Positions 1 to 35,603 of a stretch of DNA of 64,000 nucleotides are shown in pieces (positions within the stretch are counted from its first letter, which is position 1; the number at the start of each line of letters is the position of its first letter). This DNA is from Fimbriosthenelais zetlandica (Eukaryota). Position numbers and translations under genes: made by a program. The stretch is taken from contig OZ365112.1 of the NCBI GenBank assembly GCA_977030845.1, forward strand, positions 22,506,001-22,570,000, written 5' to 3'. The notes below the pieces were generated by a model, which saw nothing but the letters and a program-made list of their open reading frames with translations, did no database searches and was not told where the DNA came from.

Positions 1-3000
1 ACAGGTTCGCCTGCATTGTGAATGTAGCCATCATCAATCATGGGTATTTTATCCTCATCAACAGGGGACGTTACCTGAGAGGTCTCTAAATGAACATTGG
101 TAGTTGTTACACATGGGTAACTTTCACTTTGACTATCTCCAATGATTTCTTGTGTAGAATCTTTCACTGGTAGTGGCGATACACGATCAGGGGGAGCATT
201 TTCTAGTTGACTGGCAGTCGGCAACTCATTTTTCAATTGATGAGATTGGCCTTTGAAAACGATACCACCCCTCAATCGTCGATCAACTGCAGGCCCTACC
301 TTTATTACTGGCCTGGATTCTATGGTTGGATTAAGCAAGACATCACCTTCAAATTGACCTTTAGGAATACTTTCAGGTGGCGGGACTTCTATCAGTGTAA
401 GTGGTGATTCTACCCTTTCTGTCACATTTGTGTGTCCACTGGTTTCTATATCTAGTCCCTCCTGACTTCTTCCCTTATCGATTTCCTTTGGAGGTCTCGA
501 TTTAAATGGTTCTGATTCTAATGCAGTCTGTCCAATCATTTGTTCCCTACTAGCCATCCGATGTTCTGCTTCCTCTCTCTCCAGTACCTGAACTAGATCC
601 TCCATTTTAGTACATATTTCAGAAATAGTTTCAGGAGATTTAGCACTATCTCTCGATGTCTGTTTTGATCGTTTTCTCCTGGGTTTGGGCTTGGGCGGAG
701 GCTCTGAAGACTCGTCTGTACTCTGAACTTCAGTCATTAATGAAGGGCCTTCCCTTCTATCAGTCATGCTATCATCTGTCTCATAGGCCTCGTTTACAAG
801 TCCCTGGTCAGATAGGTCATCAACAGAACGTCGGCTAACTAGGGGAAGACCAGTGTGGTCGATTTGTGGTGAAACTTGCATAGAAGAATAGCCCTTTGGT
901 TTATAATCCCTTACTGTTTTGCTTGATATCTCGTCAATCATTTTGGAGACTTCTTTCTTACCATTTCCTGACTTTACAATCAAGCCATAGGTACTGTTTG
1001 GGGACACAGTGGCAAGCCGTGTATTTTTCTCTGCGATGTCTGTATAAATAGGCTCTTTGGATGTGGCCTTAGTGTCAGAATCACTGCCGTGCATATCACT
1101 GACTACTTTGTGCTGGTGTCGTTTATTCAGTTCTGGCGTTACCAATACTCCAGGCTTTGCCTCATCATCAGCAGATCCCATTGCTGAGGGATCTCTTTCA
1201 AAAGCTCTCTGTTTTTTAAGTTTTGATCGTCTTGGCGGTCGTGGAGGAAAGCCAGCGAGATACCCTGGATCTGGTGAGAGTGGGCTCAGCTCAGGTGAGG
1301 TGGCACTGCTAGGGCTGAGCAAAGCTACTTCTGGTTCATCAAGATCTAGTTTTAATGAACCCAATGATGTGTTGATGTGCCTTTTTCTCCTGGGTGATGG
1401 CTGTATAAGGCACTCTGACTGACGAGCCCCCACTGTAGCACCATTTTCCTGCCTTTGACTTTCCACCCCTTCACCCTTTGCCTGCAAAGAAAAGAGTTTA
1501 TCACTTTGGGTAACGTCTTGATTTGGACACACTGACTCTCTACTTGATTGCACTAAATCGGTATCGAAATTATAATACTGTGAAACACCTGCATGATTTG
1601 CTAAAGGTGCAGCTTTTTTACCATCTTCCCATCTTTGCTTCCCATCAGTTCTCTTCATGGCATGTGGGGCCTTGGCAGAACCTGCTGCATTGGCCAGTCT
1701 CTGTTTTGAGGCAGCCCGTGAACGAGCTCTGCGAGGTGGGGGCACTGGGAATGGAGTAGATAGAGCAACACCTTCTTTGATAGGGCCATGTTTCTGTTTC
1801 GACTTTAGGTCCCCATCAGACTTACTAACAACCACTTTAGTTCCTGGGGTAAGTTTCTTATCAGACCGCCTCTCAGTACTCCGTCCTCGCCCCCCACCAT
1901 CTTTCCTTCGCTCAATGCTTCGGCTCTGATCACGCCTTCGTTGCTGACTAGTAGCATCAACTCGTTTGTCCTGACGGCCTCGGCCACTTCGAGACTCCCT
2001 GGCCCCAGCCTTATAAAGATTGTCATCAACAGTATTAGACCGCTGTCTTACTAACTGTTTCTCCTGAGCTTCTTTCTCAGCCAGGGCTCTTTTCACAAGC
2101 TCTGCATTCCTCTGTGCAGCAGACATACTGCTACTCCTATTGCCTTTTCTAGGTGGTGCTGTGGGGCTTTTTTGTGGTGTGGATTTAACAGATGACCTTT
2201 TAGATCTGGTTGGAGATTTGCCCTCATTTGTTATGTATTTCAATATATCAGGGGTCTTTATTTTGGGAGCTTTATCAAGAGATATCATTCTTTTAAGTTC
2301 TGGGGGGATATTGGGCCGTCGGGACCTTATACTACCACAGCAGAGGGCTGATAGGGGACCAGATGGAAAGTCATGAAGGCTATCACGGTGTATGTATTCC
2401 TTGTTTTTGGCTTTGTGAGAGCTCATTGAATAGTCAGACACCCTTGACCTGAGTGAACCTCCCCTTAATGAGGATTTTTCATCATAAGACACCTTGGATG
2501 ATATTGAGTACATGCTTCTCACTGTACTCGTTTTACTCATGGCATCATCTCTTTCCAGTGGCATATTAGAGCGGTGTGATCGGTGGGAAGACACTGGACT
2601 ATATTGGGACACAGCAGGATTTTCATTTTCATATTCTCTCCGAGATGAACCAGCTTCCTCAGGATAACCATTCACCTCTACAGAAGGCCAGTGAAGTCCA
2701 TAACCATCTGATGTACTTGGAAGTGTCGACTCCCCATCAGCATCATCATCACCGTTCTTTGCTTGTTCACGTTTCCTCTGTCTCTCCTGCTCTTCCTCAT
2801 CAAGCAGTGCTAATTCCAGAGGCAGACCTGTACGTAATCTATCAGCAAGCTTAGAAGCTTCAGTGTCTAACTGTAAAGGTTCATAAGTAACAGCCTCCTC
2901 GGAATTGGCCCTCCCCCACTCCTCAGGGGCATCGTTGGGTGACATGGCATACAAGTATGCACTCTCCCCAGGTCTCTGAGACAAAGCACTCCCCAGCTCT

Positions 3001-4738
3001 GCCCCTTCTAAATCTGCTACAGCATCTTTATTCACATCTGGTGCCTTATCTAAGGTCTTGAGCATGTCTTGCCTCCGTTTGTTTCGTTTATCATATAATT
3101 CCTTTTGTATTTTAGTCATATTCTGTTTTTGGTCTTCTTCCTCCTGCTTCATTTTTTCCTCAATTACTTTATCAAAGCTTTTTTCATTTTCTCGATCGTC
3201 ATCTATAGTGCGTTTCCTTATGGAAAAGAATTGTCTGCTTGCAAATTTCAGGTCATGGTCAAGGTCACCCGGTTTCACTGTAACATTCCTTGTTCCAAAT
3301 TTCGTCCTTTTATTATCCTCATCACCTGAACTGAGATCACTGTCTTCACTTTTATGAACATCTACTGTGATTCTCCCTGCTTGGAATCTTTGTCTCAAAT
3401 CTGTGTATATCCCACTAGGTTTATTTGCACCCACTGCAGAAGGCTGGCTCTTGAGAAAGCGTTCTTTCATAGCCAGCTCTTCTGGATTAGCTGTAAGCAA
3501 ATCTAAGCCAAGTTCTGTACCAAGTAGTTTTGGATCCAGTTTTTTTAATTGTTTCTTACCTGAGGTCCCCTTTTTCTTCCTATTTCTATGTGAGTCATTC
3601 TGCCCTTCATCAGAGACTTGGGGGTCCTCCTGGTGTCTCCTTTCCCTTTTTGTCTTCCTTTCTTTCTGACCATATTTCTGATCATAACTTTCCTGAGCAT
3701 TATATTTAGCTTTTGGGCGAGCCCCACCAAAAGCATCTTTTTTCCCTTTCTTCCTTGATTGGGGTTGTTTGAGTATACCATCTGTGGTAGACTTTCTTGT
3801 TCTATCTCTCTCGAGCTGAGCCAGTCTTATTCCATACTCATCACTAACTAGCTTGGTTCCAAACCTCACTTTCCTTTCTTCGTCCGAACCGTCATAATCC
3901 TCCGATTCCCCACCTTCTAAAGGGACCAGACAATCCTCAGCAGTCGGAGCACTTTCTACTGTACAGTCATATGGGAGGACGTGTACACCATAGGTTTGTA
4001 ACTCTGGAGAATGTTCTGGTGACTTCTCGGGTTTGGGCGGTTCAGGACGAGGTGGAAGTCTCTGAATTTCCAGTGTGGGATCACCCACTTTCATTAATGC
4101 ACGTCTAAGATGACCTACAGGCTCTTGCTCGATCTCATTGTCATCCTCTGCTGATGAGTAATCCTTGTATCTCCTCCCCCTCTTGTGATCCTCATCAGAG
4201 CCAGAGGCTACATACCCGTCATCCATACTATTTAATCTAGGAGGGGAGTTTCGTCTACCTGGTGGGGGCCACACAAAGCCTCTGTCGTCATAGTTGTTCT
4301 TGTTCATCAAAAACTCACGATATCGCTGCATTTCCTCTTCCCTTTGTCTCATGAGTTCTCTCTTTTCTGCTGCTAAAGCAATCTTTTTCAACTTCTCATC
4401 CTCAATTCGTTGTAGCTCACGACCTAGTTCCCTTTTGGCTTTCCTTTCTTTGGAAGCCTTTTTCTTCTTCTCTCTTTCCTCTTTGTCAGACAAATATAGA
4501 CTTGCCCTGCGGACTTCTAATTTTCGACGTGAATAGTCCCAATCACCACCAGATACCTCTTTTTCGCGTTCGGTAAGGTAGCTAGCAGCCTCCTGGGCCG
4601 CTGACTTCCTCCTGTCATACCGTTCTACTTCACCCGTGTTCCACTTTTTGTGTGTGTACACAGAACCATGGTGGTCAGCATGTTCCATGGCCTCCTGTTG
4701 TTCCTTTTCCCGGAGTCGGCGTCCGAAGACTGAGTTGC
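1..4738 (-). CDS. Giant internal coding exon (at least 1578 codons, open to the left window edge) of a large charged, low-complexity, probably disordered protein; nested gene or amphiphysin alternative exon
   Basis: Manual translation of the minus strand (codons starting at positions = 2 mod 3) gave no stop from 4736 to 1: NSVFGRRLREKEQQEAMEHADHHGSV...EEREKKKKASKERKAKRELGRELQRIEDEKLKKIALAAEKRELMRQREEEMQRY...IHNAGEP. Preceded by acceptor tgtatgctgtAG (phase 1). Missing from the ORF track, presumably because no stop falls inside the window. A run of plus-strand antisense shadow ORFs (1057-4536) is consistent with it. No domain recognised. Confidence 0.85.
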
Positions 4739-7055
4739 CTACAGCATACATTATTTCAGCAAATAAGTATATGATCTTCCAGAGAAATATCAGGAATATT
4801 GTGGATATCACATAAACACCTAGCTCATTTAAAAAGATTCCATCTGACATTAAAAATAAGTTATGTCATAGTGATGGAATAGTTCAATATCAATCGTAAT
4901 ATAGTTACTTGATTACTTTAGTGTGGAGTTGTGGATTATGTCCGTGTCACTGGAAAGTAGAGTTCTGTTGTCTCATTCAGGATGGTATAAATTCACACAA
5001 TAAGAGTAATCTCCTCTGAAACGGCTTCCACACATTTCATGCTTATTAATTGAGATATTAGTAAGTAATGGCCAGGGTTTATGGATTGGGAACACTGGTG
5101 AAGGAAGGAGTCAGGTGAAGGATGTCAGTAGTTTAGTATCCAGACTAGGTCAGCACAAAAAGTCATAAAGCTATACCCACCATTGACTCTTGAATTACGG
5201 TATCTGATGCACTGAATCAGCATCAAATGAGCTGAAATCACGTCTACACATTCACATGAGCAGATCAAGCGCCTGCGAAACCTACTGGTTAGTAGCAGTT
5301 TGCTCAACACAGTTCATAGCAAAGTTCAGTCAAGTCTAGCACAAGTCCATGTCTTAAATAATAGAAATACACCATGCCCAGGAGCATTAGAATAGTTCAA
5401 CAACAGCAACAGAAGCCATGCTCAGTAGATGGGTATCTGCAGGAAAGTATAATCAAATGAAGACTCATGCCAAGTGAGTGATAGGAAAGGACTCGGAAGA
5501 ACTCTGATTAGAGACAGAAGGACGATTAAAGGTAGTAGAGAAGCGTAACACAATATTTGGAATGTAATAAAATGCAAAACGGTTCAAGATGCTGGTTATT
5601 TTTGAACCACAAATACTAAGGGTAAGGTATTATTGGTGTCAAATAAAACTGTTTGCTGGTGGCGATCACACACACACTATCTCCCACAGTAGGTTGAGTG
5701 AAGAGCGTCCTTTATACCTACAAAGTAAAGCTTGATGTTTAATGTATTGTTTTTAACATGAGGACTCAAGACTCCCAGGTGTGCCTCCACATGTAGGTTG
5801 TAGATCAGAGAGCTGTATAGGCCAGCTCGAGGGTATCAACTCAAGAGCCCTCAAACTCCTCTCTCACAATGTTACTGCTCCAAAGCAGTGAGTTTAAATG
5901 AAGCTTTCCACACCTAATTGATTCCTTATTGTAAATTTAAATACTTCGTTATGAAGTTTCTTAACACAGTCCATGAAACGAAGCGATGATGTGATGTGGT
6001 CACTAACACGGTTTTTCTGTCTATCTCGTTTCAGGTTTCAGATGAATATGATGCACCACTGATGACTCACGAAGCATGAATATGAATTATCGTAATCATA
6101 TCATTGATTTTTCCATTACATCGGTTAGAGATATGCTATTCCTCATATTAAACCTGCAATTACTCCAACCAACAAGTCACGGTAGGGTGTCACGACCTCG
6201 ACCTGATCAAAATGCTAACAACCAAACGTACTGCTGAAGCAAAGTCACTGGACTCACAAACGAGCTTCCTCTGTATAGAGAAGATGCTTACAGAGTCTTG
6301 ATGGTTGTCAGGCTGAATAATTTTAAGAATTTTAATGTCCCCTCTCCTCCTGGTGACTTCCCCAACAGCTCTACCCTCTTCACCTACACAACTACTCCAG
6401 AGGTTCACCTTTATATGTATGTAAGTCCATGAGGGCAGCAGGGAGAGAGAGACTAATATACAGTTTAAAGCCCCAGGTTATAATCAGGCAAGGTAGCCAG
6501 TCCTGGTGACGCTTGGTGGGGGAGGAGGCCAGGGGCTCCAATCCCCCGGGTTAGCATGGGGCATCATGCCATGACAACATGAGATCAGGCCGTTATTACA
6601 AACTTCCAGCTGCATTGATCCTAAGTTGCTATAATTAGCTTGTACATTAAACTTATTGGCTGAGTGGCCTACGTGGGACTAGTCCATTTTAGGTTATCTC
6701 CCCTGAATTTGTCACGATCATAACAAAAGCGCGTAAATCTACCAGTTCTCAAGTTGGAATATACACGACGAAATAAGCAGCCATCGAAACGGGCCCCATC
6801 AGAGATTCAGCACAGGAGCAGGTGACTGATGTGTGTGACATTAACCCACTAATCTAGCAGGCACTAGGTGATGGCGGTGGTGGTGGTGGGGATGTGGGTT
6901 CAAGTCTTTACGTTACAGTCTGGCCCCACATCATAATGCACTGTCAAGTTATGGCTGCTTGTTATCCAAGATCCATCCACAAACTGTTTCCATTCCAGCT
7001 TAACCCTTTTATCTTAAAATCCACCACAGAGACCGCAGATGGTTAGCCACCTCAC

Positions 7056-7145
7056 ACACGTTGTGGACATGTGCTTCACGGTCTTGGGTCATGTTCAAGT
7101 ACTTCTCCTTCTTGTTAAAACCTTGTTTCGTGCGGCAGCCGGATG
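7056..7145 (-). CDS. Candidate 90-nt symmetric (phase 1-1) coding exon upstream of the giant exon
   Basis: ctgacctgttacttgtcggtAG | CA TCC GGC TGC...CAC AAC GTG T | GTgagg. Encodes SGCRTKQGFNKKEKYLNMTQDREAHVHNV and joins the giant exon in frame (...HVHNV-C-NSVFGRR). The other two frames contain stops. Confidence 0.5.
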
Positions 7146-8677
7146 CTACCGACAAGTAACAGGTCAGTTCCTTATGTGCAGGAAAAATTGGAAGTCAATC
7201 AATAATACCCTCCTCCTCCTCATCCTGTACTCTTCTGGTTGGTTTTTCACTCCATACATCTGTAATACAAGAAGAGCTATGGCACATCTACACTTGCTGA
7301 AACCAGCATTGGACCTTTAAACTGCCAGCCGGTACATCCACACCAACAAACCTACATACACATGTATACAAACTGGCACTGCTTATATCCCTCATACCTC
7401 CTACCTGCCCTGCCTCACTCAAACCTTTATATTCTTCATTATGTTCTGAGCTAACATAAAATGTCCATTATTGTACTTTATATATAGGCACTACATTAGA
7501 TTAAGCTGGGTTCGGTAAAGTTATACGGTATAAATTGGCCATAATAAAGCACATACATAAGGGTTGAGGCTATAATCGAATAAAAAATGCCATTGCCTAC
7601 TTTCGTGCAGGCTGACGCATCCTGCTGAACCAGGTCTGACTGGATGAGCCATTACTTCCTGTTCATAAAATGACAGACAATGTTCAAATCCATTCCTGCT
7701 GCCCAATCTAAATGCACGCCCATTCAGATGATCATTCTAGTGGCATAATGTAAGCCTCTGCCTGCAGGAGGGGTTGTTATAATCATAACAATTGCTTGGC
7801 TTGCATGATGCTTCACAGCAACCTGTTCTATAACGTGGAGTTAAAAATGTCCCACTCATCACTCAGAGTGACTGTCCATGATGTAGGCGACTACACAAAT
7901 CATGCATACAAAGTGAAGGCATCCATGCAAGAGTACCTTGGCCTTGGTATGTTTGTTTTTACAAAAATTGGTTCAACTAATTTGCAAGTCAGCATCATAC
8001 CATCTCAATTGTGAGCCTATTCTTCATTCAACACAGATTTCGGGTGTGTGCTTGGTCATAAGATCTATTAATACATAAAATTCTTTTGTGTCACAAACTT
8101 CAATATTACATTGGTCAGTTTCCTGAACTTGGACCAGAAGAAGTGGGCGTATACCTAAACCCAAATATTCGGCCTGACGGGTAGAAGATAGGCATTAGTC
8201 GCTGGTCATTATCTCATTAATACTCAGTATACAAGACGGGATTCCCATGGCGCCATCACAATTAGCAGGTCTGGAGTATTAATAATGAGCAGTGAGAGGG
8301 CCAAGCAGGAGGGCTATTGTCATACAGGACAAACATAAAGTGATCCCCCAAAACAAACACAGCACACTCTATACCCAGCATGACACACCATCAACCCAGT
8401 CCCAGCAATGAATTCATAAAACCAGATTCATACAGTCATTCTCATCTACCTTAAATCCATTAAACATTTCTTCACTGGTCCCCACACTGATGTAGTAATC
8501 AAATTTGTTGGCCAGTGGACCATAGGGGGTGAGACTAATTTGAAGAATGTCACTGTATAAAGGGAAATCGCATCAAGAGCGTAATCCACCCGTATATATA
8601 TAGATCTATTGTGGGATTGATTACATTTACATATCTATCTCTCTCTGCCAGTTTTCTAATCTTCCTATGTGAACTGG

Positions 8678-8691
8678 GTTGTCATGGCAAC
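8678..8691. promoter_or_regulatory. RFX X-box motif GTTGTCATGGCAAC
   Basis: Exact match to GTTRYYATGRYAAC. Confidence 0.55.
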
Positions 8692-10960
8692 CCACCATTT
8701 GCTCGTCTCTAGCTCTGTTTCCGCGGGTAGGGCTTTCCTGACCGAGGCTCATTTGTCTCACGCACAAGAAACATGTGAATTATCTACCTGTCATTATTCA
8801 AAATATACCTTATAAATAAAGAGCATATCACATTATGCCGTCTGTACATTTTGAATGACAGATCTATAGTATGCTTTATTTTTAGGAAACATGTGAAGGT
8901 TTCAAGATATGAAGGTTTCGAGATTCACATGATAAAAAATTGTCCATTAAAATATTGGGGAGATTGACCAGCCCATTAAACCTTTATAACATTAGTGACC
9001 TGAGCATGCTTGAGTTAGTGTAATGAACTCATATCATGGCATTATCCTGGCAGGACAGCCAGCAGAGATTTTTTGATTTAGTATCATGGGGGAGATGTCA
9101 ATCATGTCGTTGGTTACAGAGGGTTTGTTAGGCGGGTAGAGGCTTATCTCTGCCCGCCAGCCAGCCTCCTCTCTGCCGTGACCAGCTCACAATAGGAGCG
9201 CAGTGAGACCTATTCCCATACTCTACCACTGTTAACTTTAATCCCGAGCAAATTTGCTGAGTAAGATGCTATGTCAATCTTATGTTATATCAGACATTTC
9301 TAAGGTTAAACCTATACAGGTTATTATCAACTTATGCGAATATATATCGGGGACCAAAAATTAGAAAAAAAAATGGAATGTCAATGTCATTATTTTTGGA
9401 AGGCTAAATCGTAAAATAGTATGAGGTTATAAATGCTGGTTGCCCCCTATCAGATTCTAGGAATCGGTGCCTCCCCAACCTCAGTAACACAAGTAAAGGA
9501 TGTGGCAGAGAAGGAACTGCTTGAACAATGAGTAAGACTGAGTTCATACCAAGCTGTCGGAGCCACCGACATAAAGCTAATGGTCAATCAGTTTACCAAC
9601 CAAGTACAAAATCGGTACAAAAGGTTTAAATATGAACATAATTCACCTGTCTAAAGATTCAAGAAGTCATACCAAGGATACCAGCTTGCCAAGGATAAAA
9701 AGCAGAGCCAAATCCCCACAAAACCTTTCAGATAAATGAATTAAATGTAGGCTAAGTTGGCTGGCAGATTGAATTTAGTGCATTAACAACCAATAGCCTG
9801 TCCAGCAGAACTGATGGATGGTCATGACCGACGATCAATCTAGATTAATAAGTGTCACTTTTTAATCAAGATTCAATCAATGCCAATAACATTCCCCCAC
9901 ACCCTACACACAAACCCACACAGCCACTCACAGACACAAGTTAACTCACACATACAGGCTAATCAATAAAGGTCCAGAGCTGGTCCATCATATAGGTGTT
10001 CTGGTGTGAGGCTTTACTGACGGATCCACGTCAATATTTACACGTGCATTTTGTCACACCAGATAAAAACACCAAAAGTAGACCAAAAGGAAGATGTAAA
10101 GAAAAAATATGCCGAGAAGAGTAAAACAATCTAAATTGTATAATTGATACCAAAATGGATAATAAATTAGGTAATAAAAAGATTATACATAGCCTAAATT
10201 GACCGGGTGGTTTTGTCCTACAAGTATATGACTTTTATGAAGTTAAAACTGAACACAACTCAATATGTAAAAATAGAGAAAAGTGCCAATATGTGATAAA
10301 TGTATGGATTATCCATTTGAGGGGAGAAGGAGGTGTTACCAACCCGGTGGGTGTATGATTGGGGGAGCAGCAGGAGGAGGAGGAGGAGAGGTAAATCTTT
10401 CTGCTTGTTAAGACTCAGCCTGTCCTCCCTCTGTCCACAACACTCATCAAGCCTGATCCTCACACACCACTCATCTACAGACTCAGGCAATCACAGTGGG
10501 ATATGGTCTCCACATCTGCCGGCCTCCAGACGAGCTATCCTTGTGTGGTCACAATGTTATCCTCACTTAGTGTTAATCCTGGATGGAAGATGAGTCTGAG
10601 AGAAGGAGAAGGGAGAAGGTATTGAGGGTGGTAGTGGTGGTAGCAGCTCCTGTCAGTGCCTGTAGTTCTCTGTAGTAGCTCCAAGCAACAAGCTCTCCCA
10701 GCAGTCACAACATGAAGAGGTCCTAGGACAGCAAGCCACCACCACTATGATCCCACACCACCCACCACCACTACCACCACCACTACCACCGCCACACCAG
10801 CCTGTCCTTTACTCACTGTCCAGCTCAATGTAACTGTGGCAGGGGCCCTTTTAAAGGATAAATAATTTTTCCAGTCCTTCTTCTTCTCCCCCTCTTGTTT
10901 GAGCACCTGTCCCTTTCTTAGCTCGTATCCAGGTAGTTCTCAGGTTGAGGGGCTCATGGT

Positions 10961-11045
10961 GCTACCATGACAACATGACCTAGATAGGAAGGAGCTGGAG
11001 GAGCAGAAGGAGGAAGAGCTGCTCCTGTCTGGTTGCCATGGATAT
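10961..11045. promoter_or_regulatory. Pair of near-consensus X-boxes (GCTACCATGACAAC 10961-10974; GTTGCCATGGATAT 11032-11045) at a candidate internal minus-strand promoter
   Basis: Two X-box-like palindromes about 70 bp apart, just upstream (minus sense) of a GTGAGT donor at 10816-10811. Confidence 0.45.
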
Positions 11046-20200: not shown

Positions 20201-20490
20201 AAATCGGAGACAGAAATAAGTCTTTGTTCCAGTCTTATTTACCTTTCTAAAAAAATACATGTATTGATTGAGATGCACTGACGCTGGAAATATTTTATAA
20301 TGCAGTAACAGTGAAACTCTGATAAAATGCGGATTTATAAGAGTAAATATATCACTGAATATTAACCATGAGAATGAAACACATACATAATGACAAATAA
20401 CGTAGGAAAAGGGGTAATCTGTTTCAAATTTGAACAGGGATCCTTTACAGAATACGAGGGATGATGGCAAATACGTAGATACTTACTCAC

Positions 20491-20515
20491 TCAGCAAATA
20501 ACGAGAGAGAACCAT
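20491..20515 (-). CDS. Candidate start-codon exon (MVLSRYLL, phase 1) of the giant-exon transcript; whole exon 20491/20487-20531
   Basis: Strong acceptor tttgtttcctttctcttcAG (exon starts 20531), ACCATGG Kozak context at 20515, donor GTGAGT. The phase matches both the 7145 exon and the 4738 exon. Linkage is inferred from phase only. Confidence 0.4.
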
Positions 20516-23500: not shown

Positions 23501-25815
23501 TCTAGTTATAAGAATACAGGCAAATATCATTCACATTCAGACAGGGCATAAGACCAGGTTTTATGATGACCAATCAGGGCCAGTACCGTATTCATTACAC
23601 TATTGTGTTTTTAGAGAGATGAAAGCACTTGGAATAAATTGCCCCATCAACAAGGGCAGTGTGGTACAAGCACACACAGTGCCAAAAACCCATTCAATTA
23701 ATCCTGAAACGTCCAACACAATCATTCCATCACTCGCTGCTGCTGGCTGCTGGGCCTGTATTTTTTCTTCCTCACTATTTGGATGCAGGTGGGCTGAACT
23801 TGGTACCAGGATGGGTGCTAGTCAACCCAGTTTTTACTACGGTTACCCCCAAACAAGAACTCACATAACTAATCTTAAGTACCCTGCAACATGGCTAAGG
23901 TATTGTGAAATCAAGAAAAGTAGATTAACTCAGAAAATAGAGATTACCTAACCAAAGTGTGTATAATGTAGACCTATACTATTATGTATTTCTAGCCATA
24001 AATATAATTATTGAAACACTCGATGTGATGCATCGACAGGGCATTTTTGCAACAGCACATAAGAGATTGGTATTTGGTATAACATATGAACCTTGTCTAC
24101 CATTTTTCACCCTCATATTGCAGGGTGAACCCTGGCATAAGCTGGCAGTGAGCTGTGCCCTGGCAGCTTGTAGTGCCAGTTGTAGGAGCAGCAGTAGCAG
24201 CAGTAGTAGTAGATCTGTAGCAGTGGTCAGCCCTGGACCATCACGCCTGACCTCCCACCATTAATAATGTACATGCAATTAGTAGGTGGAAAACTGGTCA
24301 GTTTTCATGTACAAAAACACTCGTCAGTGTCGCTGCCTTTCTTGGACTGAACTCGCTTTTACAAGGGAGCTTGTCACTTTTGAATGGCTCAGCAAAAAGT
24401 AAATCAATATTTCTTTTGTGAATTCTCTTGAAAGTTGCAATATTTCCCCCATTATTGACCCTTTATTAATGGATTAATTAATCAGGGAATCACATTTAAC
24501 CTCATCTTGGCTGTTACTTTAAGGTAATATGTGTGGTTTGGGGTTTGGATGTCACCTGATAGGGTAGCCCCCAGGACAGGGCTTCAGAAGATTCCCTATT
24601 GGCAGCCAACATCAGTTTGACAACAGCTCAATCATCATCGGTGAATTGGAGCATCAATCAATACAATTTCCTCCTGTACCACACCGTGAGCTGACAGATC
24701 ACCTGAGCTGCTCACTCTCCTGGAGTTCCACTAGTCAATATTTACACCTGAGTAACTTATTCAGTTACAAGTGATCATTTCACTACTCAAAACTCGATCA
24801 GGAATGATCTCCATCATTTAAAAATGTTAATGATCCAGTTTTTCCCACAATATATAGTTTTACCATTGGGCCATATTCTACATTTATGTATTGATCATTG
24901 ATGCATCATGGTATAAGTTACAAACATGATATCTTGTTGATATGTAATAGCAAACGCCTTATGACTGAAATCAGGATTAAAGCAAGTTGGCATCGGAGCT
25001 TCACCACTTCATACCTGAGGCCACTAAGACCTCTAGCAGATTTTGCTTGGCAAAGCAGTAGCACGGAAGCAACAGTCTGCCTGGTAACACCTCCTCCCAT
25101 GCTAGAGCTGGTCAGGACCTTACCCCCAAGCCCCCAGCCCACTTCCCAATTCCCACCCACAGGCTCTCTTCCCTGAATAGCTGTAGAATCTCGAGAGTCC
25201 TATTGATTGGGGGCATCATCTGGTAAAAGCCCTGGCTACAAAGCCAGCAGCACACTAAAAGACAACAGCCGGGGGCTGGATTTAATACATCACCTAGAGA
25301 ATAGTTAGCAGGATAGCCCTGTGGACTGAGGTATCTCATCATCTCCTCCTCCTCCTTCTCCTGCTAGCCTACCCCCCACCCCCACCACACCCCTTCTGTC
25401 TGATGAAAGTGGAACTTGAAAGGAACTTAATCACATCCTATCAACATAAGTATCGATGGAAAAATATCATGTCCTCTGATCATGATTTTATCAAAGATAT
25501 AACTTCTTTTATAAAGAAAATCATTGCTGCTGCTCTACCACAACGTTTTGTATCTATATTTCTTGGATTTTCTGCTTTACCTATACATTTGCCATTGTTT
25601 GTATTAAATTCTTGCTTCATCACTATTGGTAATTCAATGCAGCCCAGCTTATTCACAGCCTCTCATATTTGTGGTATTTTTTACGGCACTAGATTTGCCG
25701 ACTCTTTCACCATCAAGTACTATTCTTCTTCCTCAGTGGTATCAGATAGCCTTTAACCCTAAGCTCAGTCAAGATCCCTCTTCCTTCCTCCATTTCCATC
25801 ATCCTGACGATGAAA

Positions 25816-25829
25816 GTTACCATGACAAC
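25816..25829. promoter_or_regulatory. RFX X-box motif GTTACCATGACAAC
   Basis: Exact consensus match. Confidence 0.55.
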
Positions 25830-26713
25830 AGTAGATATACCCCATGCCAACCTTTCTTCACAGTAGAAGATCAAAGGCTTTGTGTAGAGGGCTTATGAAG
25901 TTCTATGGTGAACAGGGGGTGGTAGAGAGTGTAGGTATAGAGGAGTGCCAGGCGGCATCAGGGCAGAGTGCTCTCCATCTGGCCACCAACGTCATCCCCC
26001 AACGTCCTCACTACGTCAAGGTCAGCCGGAAGAGGGCGAGGAGCAGCCGAGGTATGAGCAATAATCAATGAAGGACACAATCTACAGTCACTAATACAGC
26101 CTTACAGGATCCACTATAACTAATATGACCAGTCCACCGTCCGGCCTTCACCAGTAGGCTGAAATAACCTCACATCAGGCTTGACAGTCTTTAATGCAAT
26201 CCAACAAAGAATATGTCAGGGTCGCTAGTCTTTATGCTATCCTCAACCACAAAGTTACCAGATCAAGGAGCTTCTATACTGCCAACTGCTACTGGAATAT
26301 ACTATTAATACTAGACATGAAGGCAGCCTTCACACTGCAGTCACTGATCAGGACATCTTCAGTCACCTGTGCTTCAAACATTGGAGGACATCTCCTGAAG
26401 ACATCTATCTGTATGTCTGTAACACCTTTGTGTTTGAGCAGCTAATTTAATGAGCATGGCGACCACATTGGGCTGTATATAGGTCTATATAATAAAGGCA
26501 GGCATCCCATGCTGGTAGCCCTGACCTTGCCATAACCAAAACGCCAATGCTTTCATCTAGATGACCCGCAACCATAGGCAAAACTGATGAGTTTACCAAG
26601 ATATAGGCCAAAGCCGGTGAGACACATAAAAACCAATATATGGCGTATAGTAAAAGCAAGAACCCTGGGCGAGGCAAATGTCAACAGAGGCAGGCTCCTT
26701 AACCTGAGATGAA

Positions 26714-26727
26714 GTTACTATGGCAAC
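26714..26727. promoter_or_regulatory. RFX X-box motif GTTACTATGGCAAC
   Basis: Exact consensus match. Confidence 0.55.
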
Positions 26728-27361
26728 GTGAGATGCTACCTCAGGTACCTGCTGCCAGCCCGACAGGTGTCAGGGCCACCACCAGCACACAGAGTGAGAG
26801 GGCGGGTTAAAAGCTACCTCTGGAATCACTAGAACATGATTTTTTTCTATTTGAGACAATGTAAGCATCCTGCTTTGTATATTAGCAAACGCTCAGTGGA
26901 GTGTTTGTAAACTTGTCTAACTCACCTCTATCATCATTTGATCAACTCATGATTAGATGCAGGCATTAAATCAAACCAATTTTACAAAGCAATCCAATCA
27001 AAATTCCTGCACAAACAAGCTCTTCACTTTTCAAGAATCTCCTTTGTTATCTCCCCAACAAAAACAATAATGCCAATAATAAGTGTTGTTCAAGGAACGC
27101 CGTGCAAATGACCATAGCACTTCTTCATTTGGTTTGTGTTAAACTTTTTTCATCTTCGAACTTTAAAGAGTTTGTGGCGTTGGAATTAATTTAGTTTCAT
27201 GATAAAGCTTGAAGACAAGAAGGGAGGATTGACAGGGAGAGAGGATGAAGGAGGAGAGGAGGAGTAGGTGGGAGGATGTGGAGGACAGGTTGGGGATCTA
27301 GTTAGGTACACTAATCAGGTCAGGTTGCTAATTAACGTGGCACGCTCTGCTAGCCTTATGA

Positions 27362-27392
27362 CCCCCCCCCCCCCCCCCACCCCCACCCACCC
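27362..27392. repeat. Poly-C / C-rich simple tract
   Basis: C17 followed by ACCCCC/ACCC runs. Other simple tracts include poly-G near 23196-23210, CAC-rich 10735-10800 and GA-rich 16975-17130. Confidence 0.9.
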
Positions 27393-30300
27393 TACATCAG
27401 AGGGTCGATATATTTATCACCTGAGCAACTTGATACACCACAGAGAAGGCCAGAGATAAGTGATCCTTTACACGTATAGACTGTACTATAACGCTAAATA
27501 TATCAGTTACAAATGATGAGTAAAGTGAATCAATTTTCAAGGTATGAATTAGCACCTTTGTAATTGATCGTTTCACTAATCAATCCATTTTTATGTATAA
27601 TATACAGGAGAATGATAAATGACAGGCAAATGATCCAGAAAATCAAACTACGAGTAAAAGCTATTATGAAATATATAGCTTTTTACTGATCTTTTCAACG
27701 ATACAGAAATATTAGAATGGCTCTTGGCCATACAGGCAAATGATGAGCAGAGGAGTCTGTAGCTAGATAGTGCCTCAAACGTGTTGTACATGTATGCTTG
27801 GCGTGATAGTAGGTATTATTCATACACAACTATCCTCTCACATGCTACGCCACTGACTGAATGAGATTTTTTTTTGTTTCTGCGTCTGAAACATCACATA
27901 AACTACATCAGACATGGATATAAAATGTCCATTCACCAGTCCGAATTAAACCTACATTTTGTGGAGTCTGAGGAGATTTTTGGCAAACAACTGATATATT
28001 GAAATTCACAAATCTGCATCTCTTATGATTGCATTATTTAGTTGAGCCTCAATATTTCTCTGATACTTTGTCAAAGAGTCCAGCTGACATATTTTAATAT
28101 TATCACATAAGAAAATACTTGTACCTGCATGTGTAAAATGTAAAATATATGTATCTATAAATTTATATATCGATAGAGATACATGGCACTTTGAAAAGAT
28201 GAGGGAGTATGAGAGTTTTGATCACAGCTTGAACAAAAAAAAATGTACCAAAGTGGAAACTTATCCTTTAGCCTTTCACACAATTACTGATGACCTTTTA
28301 ATTAGAACTCCAGCGTTCTTACGGCTTAGCCCGCCTACGCTACACCATCCACAGTAAACCACCATTAATACAACAGGCCAAATGTGTTACTTCACTAAAG
28401 GCAGGTGCTTCTCATAAAGGCCTCAAGCACACTCAGCCCATTTTGCAAAGAGTGATCATGTCATAGCTGATTAAATCATAAGAAAATCAACCCCAGGGGC
28501 TAAAGTTCTTAAATGATCACGCAATTCTGGATAACAGGGGGAATATTCTGGATGATATTGGTATGAATTAATCAAAGCCCAATTATGGGCAGATGGCTTA
28601 GTACATCTCCAGCTTCCGTTAGAGGAAGAGGCGACCAGGGAGGTTTGAGCCGAGAGGAAGAAAGAAGATGACTTTTGATGATGAAGCAGTGAGGGTAAAT
28701 TAGCCCTCAATAGTGGTTAGTGAAGTAGGCGAGGTGAAGTGCTGGGGGCGAGGTGTAAGCGGTGCGTAGACATCTTTTTCTTACATCACACTCATTCATG
28801 GTGCGCGTGCAAGGAAATTCAATTAGCAATTTCTGTTTGTGGGGAATAATCAGAGATCATTTTTAATCAAAAAATATAATAATATAGGACCTATTGGTTA
28901 GGGATTTGTATGACTGTAGATAAAACTGGTAGAGAGGTTTGAGGTTGAATGACTTACACTTTGCACAATAATTGTTTTGTCATTCAATATTCAAAATTAA
29001 ATATATATAAGTTTGATTTGGAATCTAATCTAGTGGGCTCGGGAGTTATGTTTGGAAATGAAAGAAAACTAACTAGCTTGGGGCAATATAAGGTGGTGCA
29101 TTAAAGCGGTGCCAGTAGGGGCGGGGCGGGAGCAAATAAAGCAGCATTATACATGTGGACGAGCCTCCAGGATCACCCACAGACATTATACATGTTCAAG
29201 GGCCGCCAGGTCGAGGCAGCGCATCCTAAATGCCAAAAGGAAAAACCATTAGGATGGAAATAAATGCGAGCAAGTGATCCTCCGGAATATAACAAAAACT
29301 TCCGGCTGTAGGCTATAGTGAGAGCCGGATGGAAGCAAGAGAGGCTTGCTGAGAGATAGTGATATGGACAGAGACTCTCAACAGACAGACTGATTGGGAT
29401 TAGAGTGGACATCTAACTAGAGATGGACAGAAGCATAGAGATTGCAGACAGAGGAGACTGATAGACAGATGAGCTTGTCAGAGAGATAGATGGGTCCGGC
29501 ACTAATTACATTGCTAAACCTATCAGGCATAGAGCTTTACACAGTATTTTGTGTTGAGTGTGTGGGGGTGAGGGGCTTAAGTTTGCATGTACTGACTCTC
29601 CTCTTAATCCTCCACCATCTGATTATAGTGAGGATCATCTCTTTGAGAGGGGTAAGAGAATCAGGCGCAGGTGGAGCAACTCAGAGCTACTCCACTCATA
29701 ACTAGGCCCCTGGGTCCAATAAAAGCAGTCCCCATATAAACTAACTATACCATTTTTATAGTATAGAATCAGATTTATAAGGAATTGAGAAAAGACGCTG
29801 AAAGGGGTGAGTCTGGCACAAATTCTACATAATACATTGTATATCTAGGTATAGATATAATATAATCTTAGAATATTGTATTATATCGGACGGTATATTA
29901 ATACCCAGGCTTTAATGGAAACAGTTTGATCTATTATGAATTAGAAGACTATGATTATCCACACATCTAGGAATGAAGGTGGGTGGGTGATCAAGGGGGG
30001 GGGGGGGAAGTGCATACATGTTCCTCCACAAAGAGGTGTTCACTATTCCAACCCTCTACACCGGAGACCTGTATATTGTATGGATAAAAACGGTAGTAAG
30101 AAGGGAGCCTATAAGCTTCAGGTAAGTAGGAGGAATTATAGACTAGAGTCCATCACACACAAAAGATCTGGGTGAATAGAGGCAGGTGTAGATTGGAGCA
30201 TTAGTGGAGGCAACTCTCATTTATAAATAACTAAAGCTTCACTGAAAATAATGTGCAAAAAAATGCGGTCCATAAGTACTGCAACACTATTATAAAATGG

Positions 30301-32800
30301 CAAAAAGTTGCAACATTTCCAATGTGAAGGAAGTAAAGCATGATTAGTATTCCACAAGACTATTGGGACTATTCAACACATAAAAGAATGAATCAGATAC
30401 GTTTCTTTGCTTGTCTCAGTCCATGTATATACATGGAGGTTTATAATATGTTCTGTATTGCATATATAGCATCGCTGTTCTTTTGTGAGCTTGTCAGAGG
30501 ACAGTGGACTATTAGCTTCCACATTAGCGCTCCATGGCCCACCCCCATTATCTCTAATGTATCTCACACAACCCTGACTGTATAGATATATTCAATACTA
30601 AACACTTCCACCCAGTGTATTCCTGCTAAACGGCACATACCCTATGAATAATTGACATCAGACAATCTCATGGAATCAATGATATTATCACACATACAAT
30701 CTTAGCATAGAACTGAGAAGACTTAGCTCAGAAGATTACCAAGTCAATACCTCACAGAGAAAAGAATTCATGGAAGCTTCACGAGCAAAATGCAAATCAC
30801 TTTTCCTCAGGCATAGAAAAAATACCAGGTCATAAATCTTCCCGTACTAATACACGAGTGAGGACACATGAACCGTTTTAAACCCAAGATTTTTCTACAG
30901 CTCCCCCTAAAAATATATTATCTCCCTTAACCCTGAAGGCCAGGTGCATGCAGGAATGATACTCTGCCTGTAGAAGTGTATACTATTACTTCACACTGCC
31001 TAAACAATGTATTAAACAAACGCCTATGACCAGGAACACCACAATATACACAGGGAAGCTAAACATATATATCCCTGAGAGTAAACTGAAGATCACTAAT
31101 GTTGGATGGTGACACCAAACTCGGAAGCGGACCGATGACTAAGTGTTTACTTGGGTGCAAATCTACCATCCCTTGAATGTCAGAAAATGGCAGAGGCTGA
31201 AAGGATTGGCACAATAATGTATAATTCAATAAAAATAGGGAATGATATGATCCAAGAGAAACAAATATTTAGAATGCATAAATACCGCTATATTAATTTT
31301 CATCCGAGTTTATTTAACTTTAATAAAACATTAACATTAAGGCAATCAATTTTGCTGTATAAAAGACTAAAAAACAATTACAAAGTCGATGTCAATTGCT
31401 CCATATTTTATAAGATCCAGGGCATATACAATAGGAGTATGCATATATGTCAAATGGGGAAGGGAAGTAGAGGGCTATTGAGGGCCCATTGACAGCTCTG
31501 ATCCAAAATATGAGCAATAAATGGCCGGGCGTCAGCCAGAGATGTAGTCAGAAGTAGCATGTCATTCCTGTATCTATCATTAACAGCGTGCATACCTACC
31601 ATTACCACACACACCCTATATCATTCACACCCTATAGCCAAAACACACTCAACGATCAAACTAGAATAGGAAAATTGGCAGGCCACAAATATAATACTAA
31701 GTATACACACAGTCATTCACTGATGGACAGTGGAGGGGTTGATGGATAGACAAAGAGACAGACAGGGAGATATGGGAAGTTAGCAGCGATGTGAAAGTAT
31801 CTGATAATCCTATATGATATCAAACAAGGAACAGGGAAAACATTAAAACATGCTACATTATGAGGGCCTGCCAAGTAAGAGACCCACATACCATCTTCCC
31901 ACATAGTCATGAGACAAAGTCAGGGAGGCCTCCGACATGGCTTCCTGCCATACTCCAAGGTTAAGCTTGGTCTAATCTACACAAATGCCAAAAAAGTCGA
32001 CCTGATTCCAAATTCCTGGCTGATAACCTACCCATTATGTAAGCAGGGACATTTTTTTAAGATTTAACATTAAAGGCAGAGAAAACTATTGACGCCAGGA
32101 GAAAGTAGCAACATCCTTATAATATGTTTCCACATGAATATAAAGTTTTTGAAGAGAACATATCTGTCAAGAAAGTCAGAAATTAAGACCTGTAGGGAAT
32201 GAACAGTGATGTAAAGGCCTGATAATGCTGATATAACTCTATTTTTGTTGGGTTTTTTAACCTAGTTAAGAGATGGAGAGTAAGAGTGTTGATGTGAGCA
32301 GGGTGGGATGTACTATAGGAGGAAGATCTATAGGTGAGGGTCATGTTTGCCCTGGAAAAACTTGCTCTATTTTGTCTACATGCTAACGACTTGCTCTTCA
32401 TCTGGAGTCCTTCTTATACTGATATGTCAAGGGCCCGCTTCACGAGTAAAGTATTTTGAACAGATTTCCAACAATCCTTAACCCAGCACATACCATAAAA
32501 TCTATAAATAAAATGCTATTATCCTTTGGATCCCATACAAGGGGAACCTTGGGTGAGGGGGTTAAAAGGTGTCAGGTATGCAGAGTTCAGATGAATGCGG
32601 TTATATGTATCAATACAACATATTTATAGAGAAGATGTGGTCAGATTCGTGTGTATTTATTAATTTATACTCGAGCACACCACAAGGTATCTTAACGGCC
32701 CCTCATTAAGGGCTGAGAGTCACAGCTTTAACATAGGGGAGAACGAGAGTGTCATGCTAGCCATGAGGTAATGTGTACAACACTAGTCTACTGTCACTCC

Positions 32801-32980
32801 CAGTGGCGGATGCAGGGGGATTCGGGGGCGGGGCTGGGGCTGGGGCCCCGCACTATTTTTTTTAAAGAATAGATTACAAAAAGATCGGAACTGCCAATGT
32901 TTCCGCACTTTCCACACTCAAGTCAATGTAAAATCTCCATAGGTAATCATTTGCCAGGCATCAGCCCTCCTCCTCCCGAC
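32801..32980 (+). mobile_element. Truncated MITE / non-autonomous DNA transposon terminus
   Basis: Begins CAGTGGCGGATGCAGGGGG...GGGGCCCCGCAC, a terminus style common in invertebrate MITEs; the partner inverted repeat was not found. Confidence 0.3.
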
Positions 32981-35525
32981 CTACACACGTACTACACGTA
33001 CATGACACGTCCTGTCAGCACCGTGTAGAGACAGTGTTAGGAGCAACTCGTAGAGACATCACTCATCACACTACACGCTTCATGATTAAACTGCTATACT
33101 ACCAGCCAGGAGCAACTCCCGACATGTGAGACGACGAGAGAGAATTGTATTTGATAAATGACGGTTTTGATAAGACATCTAATAAAAAAAAAGTTCATCA
33201 ACTACTGGTACTCGTTGTGAGTGCTCTCAATTGATAAGGTGGAAATTATATACATGACATTACAGTCAAAACATATTAGGTATGGAGGTATGTAATGCTA
33301 TTAAATATTAATAGTCTGGAATGTGGTATTGGCGCATTGTATATCATATATATGTATATCATTTTAACTTGCACTTGAGCTGACTCATCAACGAAGGACC
33401 TAAATGCTCACGTCAGTGGATAATCAAATAGCATAAGTATTGAGGAGAAAATGTGTTTCCCCCTGTGTTCCTTTCCTATGGTCTTATCTATCAATGTATG
33501 GGGTCAAGAAGTGATCAAGTACACTCAGGCATTGTGACGGGCGGATAGGAATAGAATGAAAAAATCTGAAATATCTAATGGGTGAAAGGCCAAAGGAAAA
33601 AACTTAAAGTACACATATTTTTCAGTGGGCTGACAAATATACCAGGGCAAACTTGCCGTCTAAACAAGTCTAAAGAATCAGTGAAGCTCAAAAGAGTATG
33701 GGAATGGTTCCCCTGTTTGTCTACACTACATAAGCGTGTAAATTATGTCATGATTAACTGAGCAGAAATAACAGGGTGCATATCACATTGTAGACAGGGG
33801 TTAACCACCACGTAGCCTTGGCATGATTCAAAGCAAGACTTTTGATAGATATTGATTTGGTCCTATCCAAGATATCGGCAGAAATTCTTTTTTTTCTTCT
33901 AAGTAAGTCCTGCCCTCAGCAGGTAAGAACCAAACTCTGCAAATCCGGCTTGCCATCTTAGTACATGTCCGCCTCAAGAGTCATGAATCATAGCTGACCT
34001 AGGAAGGTATTCTAGTGGGGAGAGGTAATTAGAAGGTGTATCAAGCCAGCCAGAAAGTAGCTCTGTGTGAAATCATCAACTGATAATGATGCCAATCCCA
34101 GTGTTTGAAAAGGCAGAGTTCAACCTGCTACTTTTATCCATTCCTACTTCATTTGGATCTTTGGTCATTGAAATAAAATATGAGTAAATTAAGGATACAT
34201 GTTCCACATACATTACTGTACATTGCAGGGTAAAGCCCTAACTGTATCTATACTCTTTCGCACCTACAATATCCATTGTAATAATTTGTATGTAGGGATG
34301 TATTTTACTTCAGTTTTTATGTACCGGTAAGGAATGCCGAGGAAAAGGAAGTAGTACATGGATCATCATAATCAAGGGTCCTGTGTATCTATACACCCAT
34401 TAGGAATGTGTTCCATTTCTATGCTGGAAGATCTAATTCATTCTTGGGTTCTTTACCCATAAATGGGAGGGATCATCATTGAATGACAGCCAGCAAGGTT
34501 AGTGTGGCAACTAGTAGGACAGCATTTGCTTAGATGTAAACCCATCAGAGCATGTAATACACTGGTGACATTCGCCCTACATCCATCACTAGCATAGGTT
34601 TAATCCTTCTCTATCATACTTAGTACTTTTAAACATAAATAGCAACAGAGATAACAATTGCAATGTTTTAATATATTGTATCAACTAAATGAATTAATGG
34701 AAATCCAAAGATTCTTATAAAAAGCATTTAACAAAACAGAAAAGATTTTGGATGGGCTTCCACTCAAACAAGTCAAATAAACCCACTTAAGCTACTATCT
34801 TGAGACTTGACCTTATTAATTTGGAAGAAACATAAGAAGACCCAGTCCACGGGGGTCTACTTTATTTTAGGCCCAATGACAATGGAACTGATTTAAACTG
34901 GAACGAGGATGTTCATTAACAGGAGGCCAGTACAATAGTGAATAGATGCCAATACACATCGAATATAAGTCAAATTCAGTTAAGTTAGGCCTAGCCTAGG
35001 CTATATCAGCAAGGTGAGGAGGAGGGTAAGGTAGGCCTAAACACCTGCAATCATGTATAAATATTATAATAAAGAATGGGGAATCGCCAGTAGTAGAATA
35101 CAACTGGTATGTACAGAAACACTTGCAAGTCTACTATAAATACAGATCATCATCATCACACACACAGACTGACACAGGCAGCTAGCCCCACCTGCTGTAC
35201 TTCAACCCTATCATCTCGCTTACTGGGGCAAAATTCAATTTCCCGGACCAGGGTCGGGATAACTACCATAGAAATGAAAAAAATATGTCAAGAAATGTCA
35301 AATATTAATCTACATCTTACAGGCTATCTGTTCTTTGTCATGGTTTTGCAAAGCCATCTGTCCCACGGAAGGGGCCCCGACGTCGGCCAGGATTTGGATC
35401 CCTGACTAGGTATCTCCGCCCACTAGGATAGCAGGTTGCAGTATAATTTCACGCCACACCAGCAATATAATGTTGACACTAACTGATGCAAATGTTTCCC
35501 TGCTTGGACAAAAATATTCTCTTAC

Positions 35526-35603
35526 CTTTTCTTTTGTCCTGAAGACCCGTTTTTGTAAAACTTTCGCAAACGTACCACCCCTAGACGGTCCACTCTCCGC
35601 CAT
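35526..35603 (-). CDS. AMPH: Amphiphysin/BIN1-family N-BAR protein, coding exon 1 (N-terminal amphipathic helix H0)
   Basis: ATG at 35603 gives MAESGPSRGGTFAKVLQKRVFRTKEK followed by AAG|GTAAGA (phase 0). Aligns to human amphiphysin GIFAKNVQKRLNRAQEK and BIN1 IASNVQKKLTRAQEK, ending at the same EK position. Remaining BAR/SH3 exons not found in the window. Confidence 0.72.

Follow-up and report, generated by a model that had tools for sequence, protein, structure and literature searches.

An amphiphysin exon and a giant open reading frame on the same strand

The window analysed here, a 64,000-nucleotide (nt) stretch of the genome of Fimbriosthenelais zetlandica (assembly GCA_977030845.1, contig OZ365112.1, positions 22,506,001 to 22,570,000), carries on its minus strand the first coding exon of an amphiphysin gene and a giant open reading frame (ORF) that runs off the left edge of the window, exon 1 lying 30.7 kb 5' of the ORF. 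We consider it likely that the giant ORF belongs to an independent gene nested in amphiphysin intron 1 on the amphiphysin strand. The coordinates of the features are collected in Table 1.

Exon 1, which an earlier sequence-only reading of this DNA had already assigned to amphiphysin, translates to MAESGPSRGGTFAKVLQKRVFRTKEK and is followed by gtaag; its phase-0 donor (AAG/gtaaga) scored 11.1 with a rough donor matrix. As in the first exon of amphiphysin/BIN (N-BAR) genes, the ATG is followed by the pattern ..FAK.VQK....EK, and the H0 motif at this exon (GTFAKVLQKRVFRTKEK) scored 47, whereas the background maximum of the same motif in the six frames of the whole window was 26. The probes for the BAR and H0 regions were short motifs of human and fly amphiphysin, and the matches were then checked by PDB searches. 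Although the 26-residue exon 1 peptide alone had no PDB match at E values of up to 10, joining it to exon 2 of a relative (described below) as a search probe lifted the score against Drosophila amphiphysin (1URU) from 26.8 to 43.1 bits and the score against human amphiphysin (4ATM) from 22.3 to 40.3 bits. In these alignments, the exon 1 peptide covers 1URU residues 5-23 and 4ATM residues 6-24, a gain of 16-18 bits that was colinear over the junction. The motif score, together with this colinear gain, makes the exon 1 assignment sound. A CCAAT sequence is present immediately 5' of the exon. No exon-2 or later BAR motif rose above background in the six frames of the whole 64-kb window, on either strand, and the earlier statement that no BAR exon 2 separates exon 1 from the giant exon therefore holds.

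A giant coding frame under purifying selection

The giant frame is open from position 4865 to position 3 (1621 codons) and contains 0 stops, vs 53-174 in the other five frames; it escaped the ORF track solely by running past the window edge. Three unnamed relatives were identified when 1.84 billion representative proteins were searched exhaustively with HMMER: P0001 (2951 amino acids [aa], 68% identity, E = 0), encoded on two Logan contigs (L001 and L002); P0002 (3262 aa, 35% identity, E = 3e-60), encoded on a 2.5-Mb ENA contig (L003); and P0003 (1472 aa, then an adjoining 1036-residue frame; 38% identity, E = 6e-23), encoded on an ENA contig. The DNA-level comparisons below cover L001/L002 and L003, and P0003 was compared as protein only. 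P0001 and P0002 are both encoded in single uninterrupted frames that end in their own stops. The L001 frame comprises 2964 codons from an ATG at 9962 (MPDEIVLNEVGVYVVS...), the position of which matches the window ATG, the gene caller having chosen a later GTG (2951); the L003 frame comprises 3262 codons.

Other searches added little to this set. A word-based protein search with the window ORF gave no match, and the same type of search with a three-sequence profile recovered P0001 only; an ESM Atlas feature search with residues 1-600 gave a best score of 0.58, which is noise, and two JGI metagenome scans, one with the KPPYTLWGE motif and one with an N-terminal alignment, found no further relatives. 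No Pfam domain was detected in the window ORF or in P0001-P0003. The family is detectable in only four genomes or assemblies, has neither a name nor a domain, and the gene is one that ORF-based and standard annotation missed.

The start of the frame is conserved. As in the window, in-frame stops lie closely 5' of the orthologous ATG, at 5 codons in L001 and 9 codons in L003, and both the ATG and the N-terminal peptide are retained (MSDGIFLNELGVYVIS / MPDEIVLNEVGVYVVS / MVTDLSGASIVGWYVIS), with the DNA similarity between the window and L001 beginning about 25 nt 5' of the ATG. Over 1605 codons aligned between the window and L001, the proportion of synonymous differences (pS) was 0.73, i.e., saturated, and that of non-synonymous differences (pN) was 0.22; the ratio of the corresponding substitution rates (dN/dS) was approximately 0.1-0.2 in every 200-codon block in which dS was unsaturated. 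Judged from pN/pS, from the conserved ATG behind an in-frame stop, and from the conserved N-terminus, the giant frame is a real protein-coding gene under purifying selection, with its translation start at 4850. A chance open frame, a decaying pseudogene, or the ORF of a mobile element would be in keeping with the lack of a Pfam domain and of a named homologue and with the low-complexity composition, but frames of 1621-3262 codons remain open at one and the same place with respect to amphiphysin in three genomes, synonymous divergence is saturated while non-synonymous divergence is low, and no tandem repeats were found within the giant ORF. The probability that the frame is nonfunctional seems to us close to nil.

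These comparisons also revise the exon structure given by the sequence-only reading, in which an exon of at least 4.7 kb began at an acceptor at 4738 and was joined to two small upstream exons, 7145-7056 and 20515-20491. The large exon stands, its frame now being open for 1621 codons up to the left edge of the window, but it starts with the ATG at 4850 and not at 4738. The stretch 4850-4738 encodes the hydrophobic segment described below and ...GNSVFGRRLRE, both conserved in the relatives, which argues against an acceptor at 4738. The chain of three exons does stay in frame, but it would splice out this conserved coding sequence. Furthermore, the 90-nt exon 7145-7056 has no counterpart in the orthologous L001 interval even though the flanking non-coding blocks are conserved, and the 25-nt first coding exon, for which no support was found, is beyond the relative's 10 kb of upstream sequence.

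Amphiphysin exon 2 lies downstream of the giant ORF in relatives

In both relatives with readable DNA, amphiphysin exon 2 (LLENLGKADRTTDE...) is located on the same strand, 2.9-5.2 kb 3' of the stop of the giant ORF: at 5.2 kb in L001 and L002, where its peptide is LLENLGKADRTTDEVFEENVINFQKQQ, and at 2.9 kb in L003, where it is LLENLGKADRTTDEQFEENVQNFKKQE. The exon is 81 nt long and in phase 0, with the acceptor ..tttcag or ..ttccag and the donor gtgggt or gtaagt, and the PDB chains matched by its peptide are exclusively those of amphiphysin, BIN1, and BIN2 (E 1e-5). The peptide starts at residue 24 of the fly protein, which is the handover point of an exon 1 of 23-26 residues. Further 3' in the L003 species (L009), motif scoring together with a PDB sequence search revealed two more same-strand BAR exons, both bounded by canonical splice sites; the first reads ...FYAAIKETYEDDWIGYTEVVNAVE, and the second (SLSMLWEDYLTTLAEQVHAPLHAYIGRFPEVK) corresponds to residues 104-132 of 1URU (E 1.3e-3), with amphiphysin/BIN chains accounting for 6/6 of its PDB matches.

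The order of the ORF followed by exon 2 is thus shared by L001/L002, the protein of which is 68% identical to that of the window, and by L003, at 35% identity. With exon 1 placed 5' of the ORF in the window and exon 2 placed 3' of it in the relatives, the combined gene order would be exon 1, giant gene, exon 2. Conserved nesting, by which the sequence-only reading had proposed to judge its suggestion, is in this respect borne out by exon 2 on the same strand 3' of the ORF in L001/L002 and in L003. In the L003 species, nesting is deduced from the need of exon 2 for an upstream first exon.

The same observations bear on whether the giant gene is nested at all. The exon-1-like sequence at 35603-35526 could be nonfunctional, with amphiphysin starting between the ORF stop and exon 2 and the giant gene being its neighbour on the upstream side, as might be argued from the lack of a PDB match for exon 1 alone, from the lack of an exon 1 within 50.9 kb 5' of the ORF in the L003 species, and from the fact that exon 1 and exon 2 never occur together in the window. 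However, exon 2 starts at BAR residue 24, in phase 0 and behind a canonical acceptor, and so needs an upstream coding exon, and no H0-like exon or peptide was found in the 2.9-5.2 kb between the ORF stop and exon 2 in L001 or L003. Window exon 1, moreover, combines an ATG and a strong phase-0 donor with the H0 score, the gain in bits, and the CCAAT sequence given above. A non-nested neighbour is therefore unlikely.

A second arrangement would keep exon 1 functional but splice it into the giant exon as an alternative last exon, yielding a fusion of H0 with the giant tail. The two share a strand, and all three species have an AG some 100 nt 5' of the ATG; however, exon 1 ends in phase 0, the TGA at 4868-4866 closes the frame 5' of the ATG, and if the acceptor-like ccag near 4950 were used, the reading frame would meet a TGA immediately. 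The sole phase-0 AG just inside the coding region (aaatgag/CTA) is out of phase in L001. Such a fusion is very improbable.

An independent nested gene or a giant amphiphysin isoform

The reading of the giant frame as an independent nested gene is supported by its own conserved ATG, its own stop in two relatives, purifying selection, and the position of exon 2 3' of the ORF. A complete coding region would accordingly start inside intron 1, as seen in the window, and stop before exon 2, as seen in the relatives only; AATAAA/ATTAAA signals occur between the ORF stop and exon 2 in these relatives. The unrecognised same-strand nested gene that the sequence-only reading put forward as one of its two options is, on this evidence, the option to be preferred.

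Its other option was a giant amphiphysin isoform, in which an alternative promoter is used, a donor inside the giant exon is spliced to BAR exon 2, and a long disordered N-terminus replaces H0. Such an exon would have an acceptor and a donor in the host frame and no start or stop of its own, which is not what the giant exon presents. The isoform draws on the location of the frame on the same strand, inside amphiphysin and 5' of exon 2, on the conservation of this arrangement, and on the acceptable scores of some phase-0 GT sites inside the ORFs of the relatives. Nevertheless, these ORFs reach their own stops, and beyond the final phase-0 donor-like site with a score of 7 or more they stay open for another 954 codons in L001 and 356 codons in L003; scores on the same rough matrix are 9.7-11.8 for the genuine donors of exons 1 and 2. 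The tails past these sites contain 0 in-frame stops vs 3-110 in the other frames. Because open tails are not expected of intronic sequence, the main product appears to run to its own stop. In addition, the C-termini of the relatives' ORFs are non-homologous and unalignable, so no conserved donor is visible, and no family member with a BAR or SH3 domain was found among the 1.84 billion proteins searched. We consider the isoform improbable as the main product, and this half of the earlier reading finds no support here, although a rare read-through or fusion isoform may occur.

Several points weigh against an independent nested gene. The ORF continues past the window, and its stop and exon 2 are consequently known from the relatives and not from this species. 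In the L003 species, exon 1 was not found within 50.9 kb 5' of the ORF, a distance walked in five steps along the 2.5-Mb contig. The donor matrix used to discount an internal splice site is only approximate, and the promoter, the 5' untranslated region, the polyadenylation site, and the absence of fusion transcripts are all deductions.

If the gene is independent, its coding region would consist of one exon of approximately 9 kb, translated from its own ATG at 4850 to its own stop, which, judged from two relatives, would lie approximately 4 kb past the window edge and a few kb 5' of amphiphysin exon 2. Its own promoter, perhaps close to the conserved block 6566-6660, would drive transcription, which would end at a polyadenylation site located 5' of exon 2. 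Amphiphysin pre-mRNA would then have to read past the polyadenylation site of its guest, and amphiphysin transcripts would have to cross approximately 9 kb of another gene together with its termination signals, making the locus a natural case for host/guest transcriptional interplay.

Nested genes are common in animals, well-known examples being OMG, EVI2A, and EVI2B in an intron of NF1 and F8A and F8B in intron 22 of F8, and the nested arrangement alone is not surprising. As in these examples, a complete gene with a start and a stop of its own seems to be located in a host intron, and the arrangement is kept across species; unlike them, the gene described here is on the strand of its host, has a single coding exon of approximately 9 kb, and encodes motifs compatible with the peptide-binding domain of the protein made by its host. 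The exon also recalls those of the giant ankyrins, in that a multi-kb exon encoding a long disordered polypeptide is associated with a gene of membrane biology, but giant ankyrin exons are internal, with an in-frame acceptor and donor and no start or stop of their own, whereas this exon has its own ATG and, in the relatives, its own stop. In the literature searched, we found no account of a gene nested in amphiphysin. What sets the case apart is threefold: a very large gene with a single coding exon on the strand of its host, selection acting on mostly disordered sequence along more than 1600 codons in a family with only three relatives detected among 1.84 billion proteins, and conserved short motifs that agree with the unusual specificity of the amphiphysin SH3 domain.

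Architecture of the predicted protein

The predicted product comprises approximately 2950 residues, with a short acidic N-terminus, one anchor, a charged helix some 90 residues long, and a tail that exceeds 2700 residues and is mostly disordered. The shares of Ser, Glu, Arg, Lys, and Asp are 7-10% each, and hydrophobic residues account for only approximately 20%. A hydropathy scan identified a single hydrophobic segment in the protein, at residues 10-31, which is preceded by acidic residues and followed by RRLRE; this arrangement suggests a signal-anchor that, by the positive-inside rule, would leave the tail in the cytoplasm. In an AlphaFold model of the first 300 residues, built from a four-sequence alignment (predicted template modelling score [pTM] 0.28), the segment is helical, with a mean predicted local distance difference test value (pLDDT) of 86-89 for residues 11-30. 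The model contains helices at residues 3-58, 72-90, and 94-184 (pLDDT >90 for residues 111-180) and a short helix at 245-254, the rest being disordered.

Conservation in the tail is concentrated in islands. In addition to DRRKSA..YLTERE..GGDWD..RRKLE and KRE..RQ.E...QR.RE.LM...NYDD.GL.WPP, which belong to the juxtamembrane helices, these include GHLRRA, SRRP.IP.EL, SKS.G..KS..K...I.EG.AL, and DFP.RPPR..K.KK. The best-conserved island of the distal tail, which cannot otherwise be aligned, KPPYTLWGED.W.R....HHPHFPN, is situated past the window edge and was found at residues 1848-1878 of P0001, 2171-2202 of P0002, and 1187-1215 of P0003; it is approximately 71% identical over 38 residues, vs approximately 32% elsewhere in the same proteins.

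RRBP1/p180 and kinectin are N-terminally anchored, long, charged proteins of the endoplasmic reticulum. They resemble the predicted protein in their short N-terminus, one anchor, and very long, highly charged cytoplasmic region with helices or coiled coils, but the likeness is one of architecture only. The new family has no decapeptide repeats, and no Pfam family is significant in any of its four proteins, including Rib_recp_KP_reg, the Pfam model of RRBP1 and kinectin.

SH3-type motifs and a possible link to the product of the host gene

Motifs of the type PxxPxR[RK] were found in 3, 3, 7, and 6 copies in the window protein, P0001, P0002, and P0003, respectively, against an expectation of 0.11-0.15 in shuffled sequences, and the observed counts were reached in at most 1 of 1000 shuffles. 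The window protein and P0001 each have a single copy of the stricter pattern PxRPxR, a count reached in approximately 6% of shuffles, and P0002 and P0003 have five copies each (0.06-0.08 expected, 0/500 shuffles), mostly as PxRPxRRxR. At least two motif sites are aligned across divergent species, PVPPPRRARSR with PKRPARRSRSR and FPPRPPRRSKLKK with FPERPPRKIKMKK; at the PPRPPRR site, the three aligned proteins (window, L001, and P0002) share an unchanged F, P, RPPR, and subsequent K.KK.

The sequence PxRPxR is the characteristic amphiphysin-specific site of dynamin, and a class II motif followed by one more arginine is a favoured ligand of the amphiphysin SH3 domain, the binding of which is multivalent (PMC6773865). 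Similarly, the PIPPPR motif of alphavirus nsP3 binds avidly to amphiphysin SH3 domains (PMC3219718). The family motifs PPRPPRR, PKRPARRSR, PTRPERRSR, and PVPPPRR fit the published consensus for amphiphysin SH3 ligands (PxRPxR, or PxxPxR with an extra Arg). Like dynamin's proline/arginine-rich domain (PxRPxR; PGVPSRR) and nsP3 (PIPPPR), the family carries several motif copies in a disordered region; it differs in having no sequence relationship to either and in bearing the motifs on a membrane-anchored protein of approximately 3000 residues.

These motifs raise the possibility, which we put forward tentatively, that the product of the nested gene is a membrane-tethered multivalent SH3-docking scaffold, with amphiphysin as the leading candidate partner. 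It is also conceivable, if rather doubtful, that host and guest form a binding pair, in which the motif array would recruit or cluster amphiphysin, and thereby dynamin-type machinery, at a particular membrane; the location of the gene in intron 1 amid a cluster of X-box-like sites (see below) could then couple the expression of the two partners. Against both proposals, the SH3 idea is post hoc, as the motif search followed the noticing of PPRPPRR, and the window protein has one exact PxRPxR only. Arg/Pro-rich motifs of this kind can also serve other SH3 domains (those of endophilin and others) or kinases. Were the pairing true, the locus would provide a rare example of a host and a nested gene that encode interacting partners, and it would add a membrane receptor to the amphiphysin biology of lophotrochozoan-type animals.

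Conserved non-coding blocks and X-box-like sites

Two non-coding blocks 5' of the giant ORF are conserved between the window and L001. The block nearer to the ATG, whose surroundings are unaligned, contains GCCAATAA and the X-box-like sequence GTTGTCATGGCA, and it may serve the nested gene as a promoter or other regulatory element. X-box-like sequences of the RFX type (GTTGYCATGGYA) occur four times in the window, vs 0.05 expected, all of them in intron 1, and three distinct sites are present 5' of the ORF in the L003 species. Several of the sites extend to GTTGTCATGGCAAC. As the flanking sequences are unrelated, the sites are not repeat copies.

Table 1. Coordinates of the features discussed in the text (window positions unless a contig is named)
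Feature	Position	Strand	Remarks
Amphiphysin exon 1	35526..35603	(-)	ATG and H0 amphipathic-helix peptide, 26 codons; phase-0 end at donor AAG/gtaaga
Amphiphysin intron 1, window part	1..35525	(-)	no BAR motif in window; exon 2 expected several kb past left edge
Coding exon of the probable nested gene	3..4850	(-)	ATG 4850-4848, 1616 codons to edge; approximately 1350 more expected by homology
In-frame TGA	4866..4868	(-)	five codons 5' of ATG; no AG dinucleotide between TGA and ATG
Hydrophobic segment, residues 10-31 (LGVYVISTIFLIFLWKIIYLFA)	4758..4823	(-)	only one in protein; conserved in P0001 and P0002
Juxtamembrane helices, residues 72-184	4299..4637	(-)	DRRKSA..YLTERE..GGDWD..RRKLE; long charged helix ending ..NYDD.GLVWPP
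PTAPPRK, residues 896-902	2145..2165	(-)	similar positions: PIAPPRR at P0001 residue 900, PVAPVRR at P0002 residue 892
PVPPPRR(ARSR), residues 1035-1041	1728..1748	(-)	PVPPPRRARSR aligned with PKRPARRSRSR of P0002
(F)PPRPPRR(SKLKK), residues 1202-1208	1227..1247	(-)	exact PxRPxR; motif in all four proteins
Conserved non-coding block	6566..6660	(-)	1.7 kb 5' of ATG; 73% identity over 97 nt with L001
Second conserved non-coding block	7778..7870	(-)	5' of the probable nested gene; 79% identity over 94 nt with L001
X-box-like site	6567-6578	(-)	in conserved block 6566..6660
X-box-like site	8678-8689	(+)
X-box-like site	10963-10974	(-)
X-box-like site	25818-25829	(-)
X-box-like sites, L003 species	L003 4132-4143; L005 17424-17435; L006 716-727		three distinct sites, 5' of ORF
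Proposed 90-nt exon	7056..7145	(-)	unsupported
Proposed 25-nt first coding exon	20491..20515	(-)	no support

Neighbouring genes and other observations

On the other side of amphiphysin exon 1, an open stretch on the plus strand (39106-39732) contains two exons of PSMD3, which encodes 26S proteasome non-ATPase subunit 3; they match the last part of the N-terminal TPR region (E 1e-16) and the first part of the PCI domain (E 7e-8). PSMD3 and amphiphysin appear to be arranged head to head on opposite strands, with amphiphysin exon 1 approximately 3.5 kb from the PSMD3 stretch. PSMD3 was not found in the 50.9-kb upstream walk in the L003 species. Pfam searches with 14 other ORFs of the window gave nothing relevant beyond the PSMD3 exon, and an Rfam search of the whole window gave no match. 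A 385-codon ORF at 53307-54464 (+) has no Pfam match.

In intron 2 of amphiphysin in the L003 species, a 156-residue ORF (L003 28694-29164, plus strand) resembles, by eye, the C-terminal part of a retrotransposon reverse transcriptase. Two tandem repeats are present in the right-hand part of the window. A 127-bp unit is repeated 1.9 times with 99% identity at 46084-46329, and a 38-bp unit (consensus ATGTAATGTTGGGGGAGATGGAGCTGTGCTGCTTCATG) is repeated in 25 copies with a 90% match at 48100-49055, where it coincides with a strong GC-skew peak of 0.40 (48001-50000).

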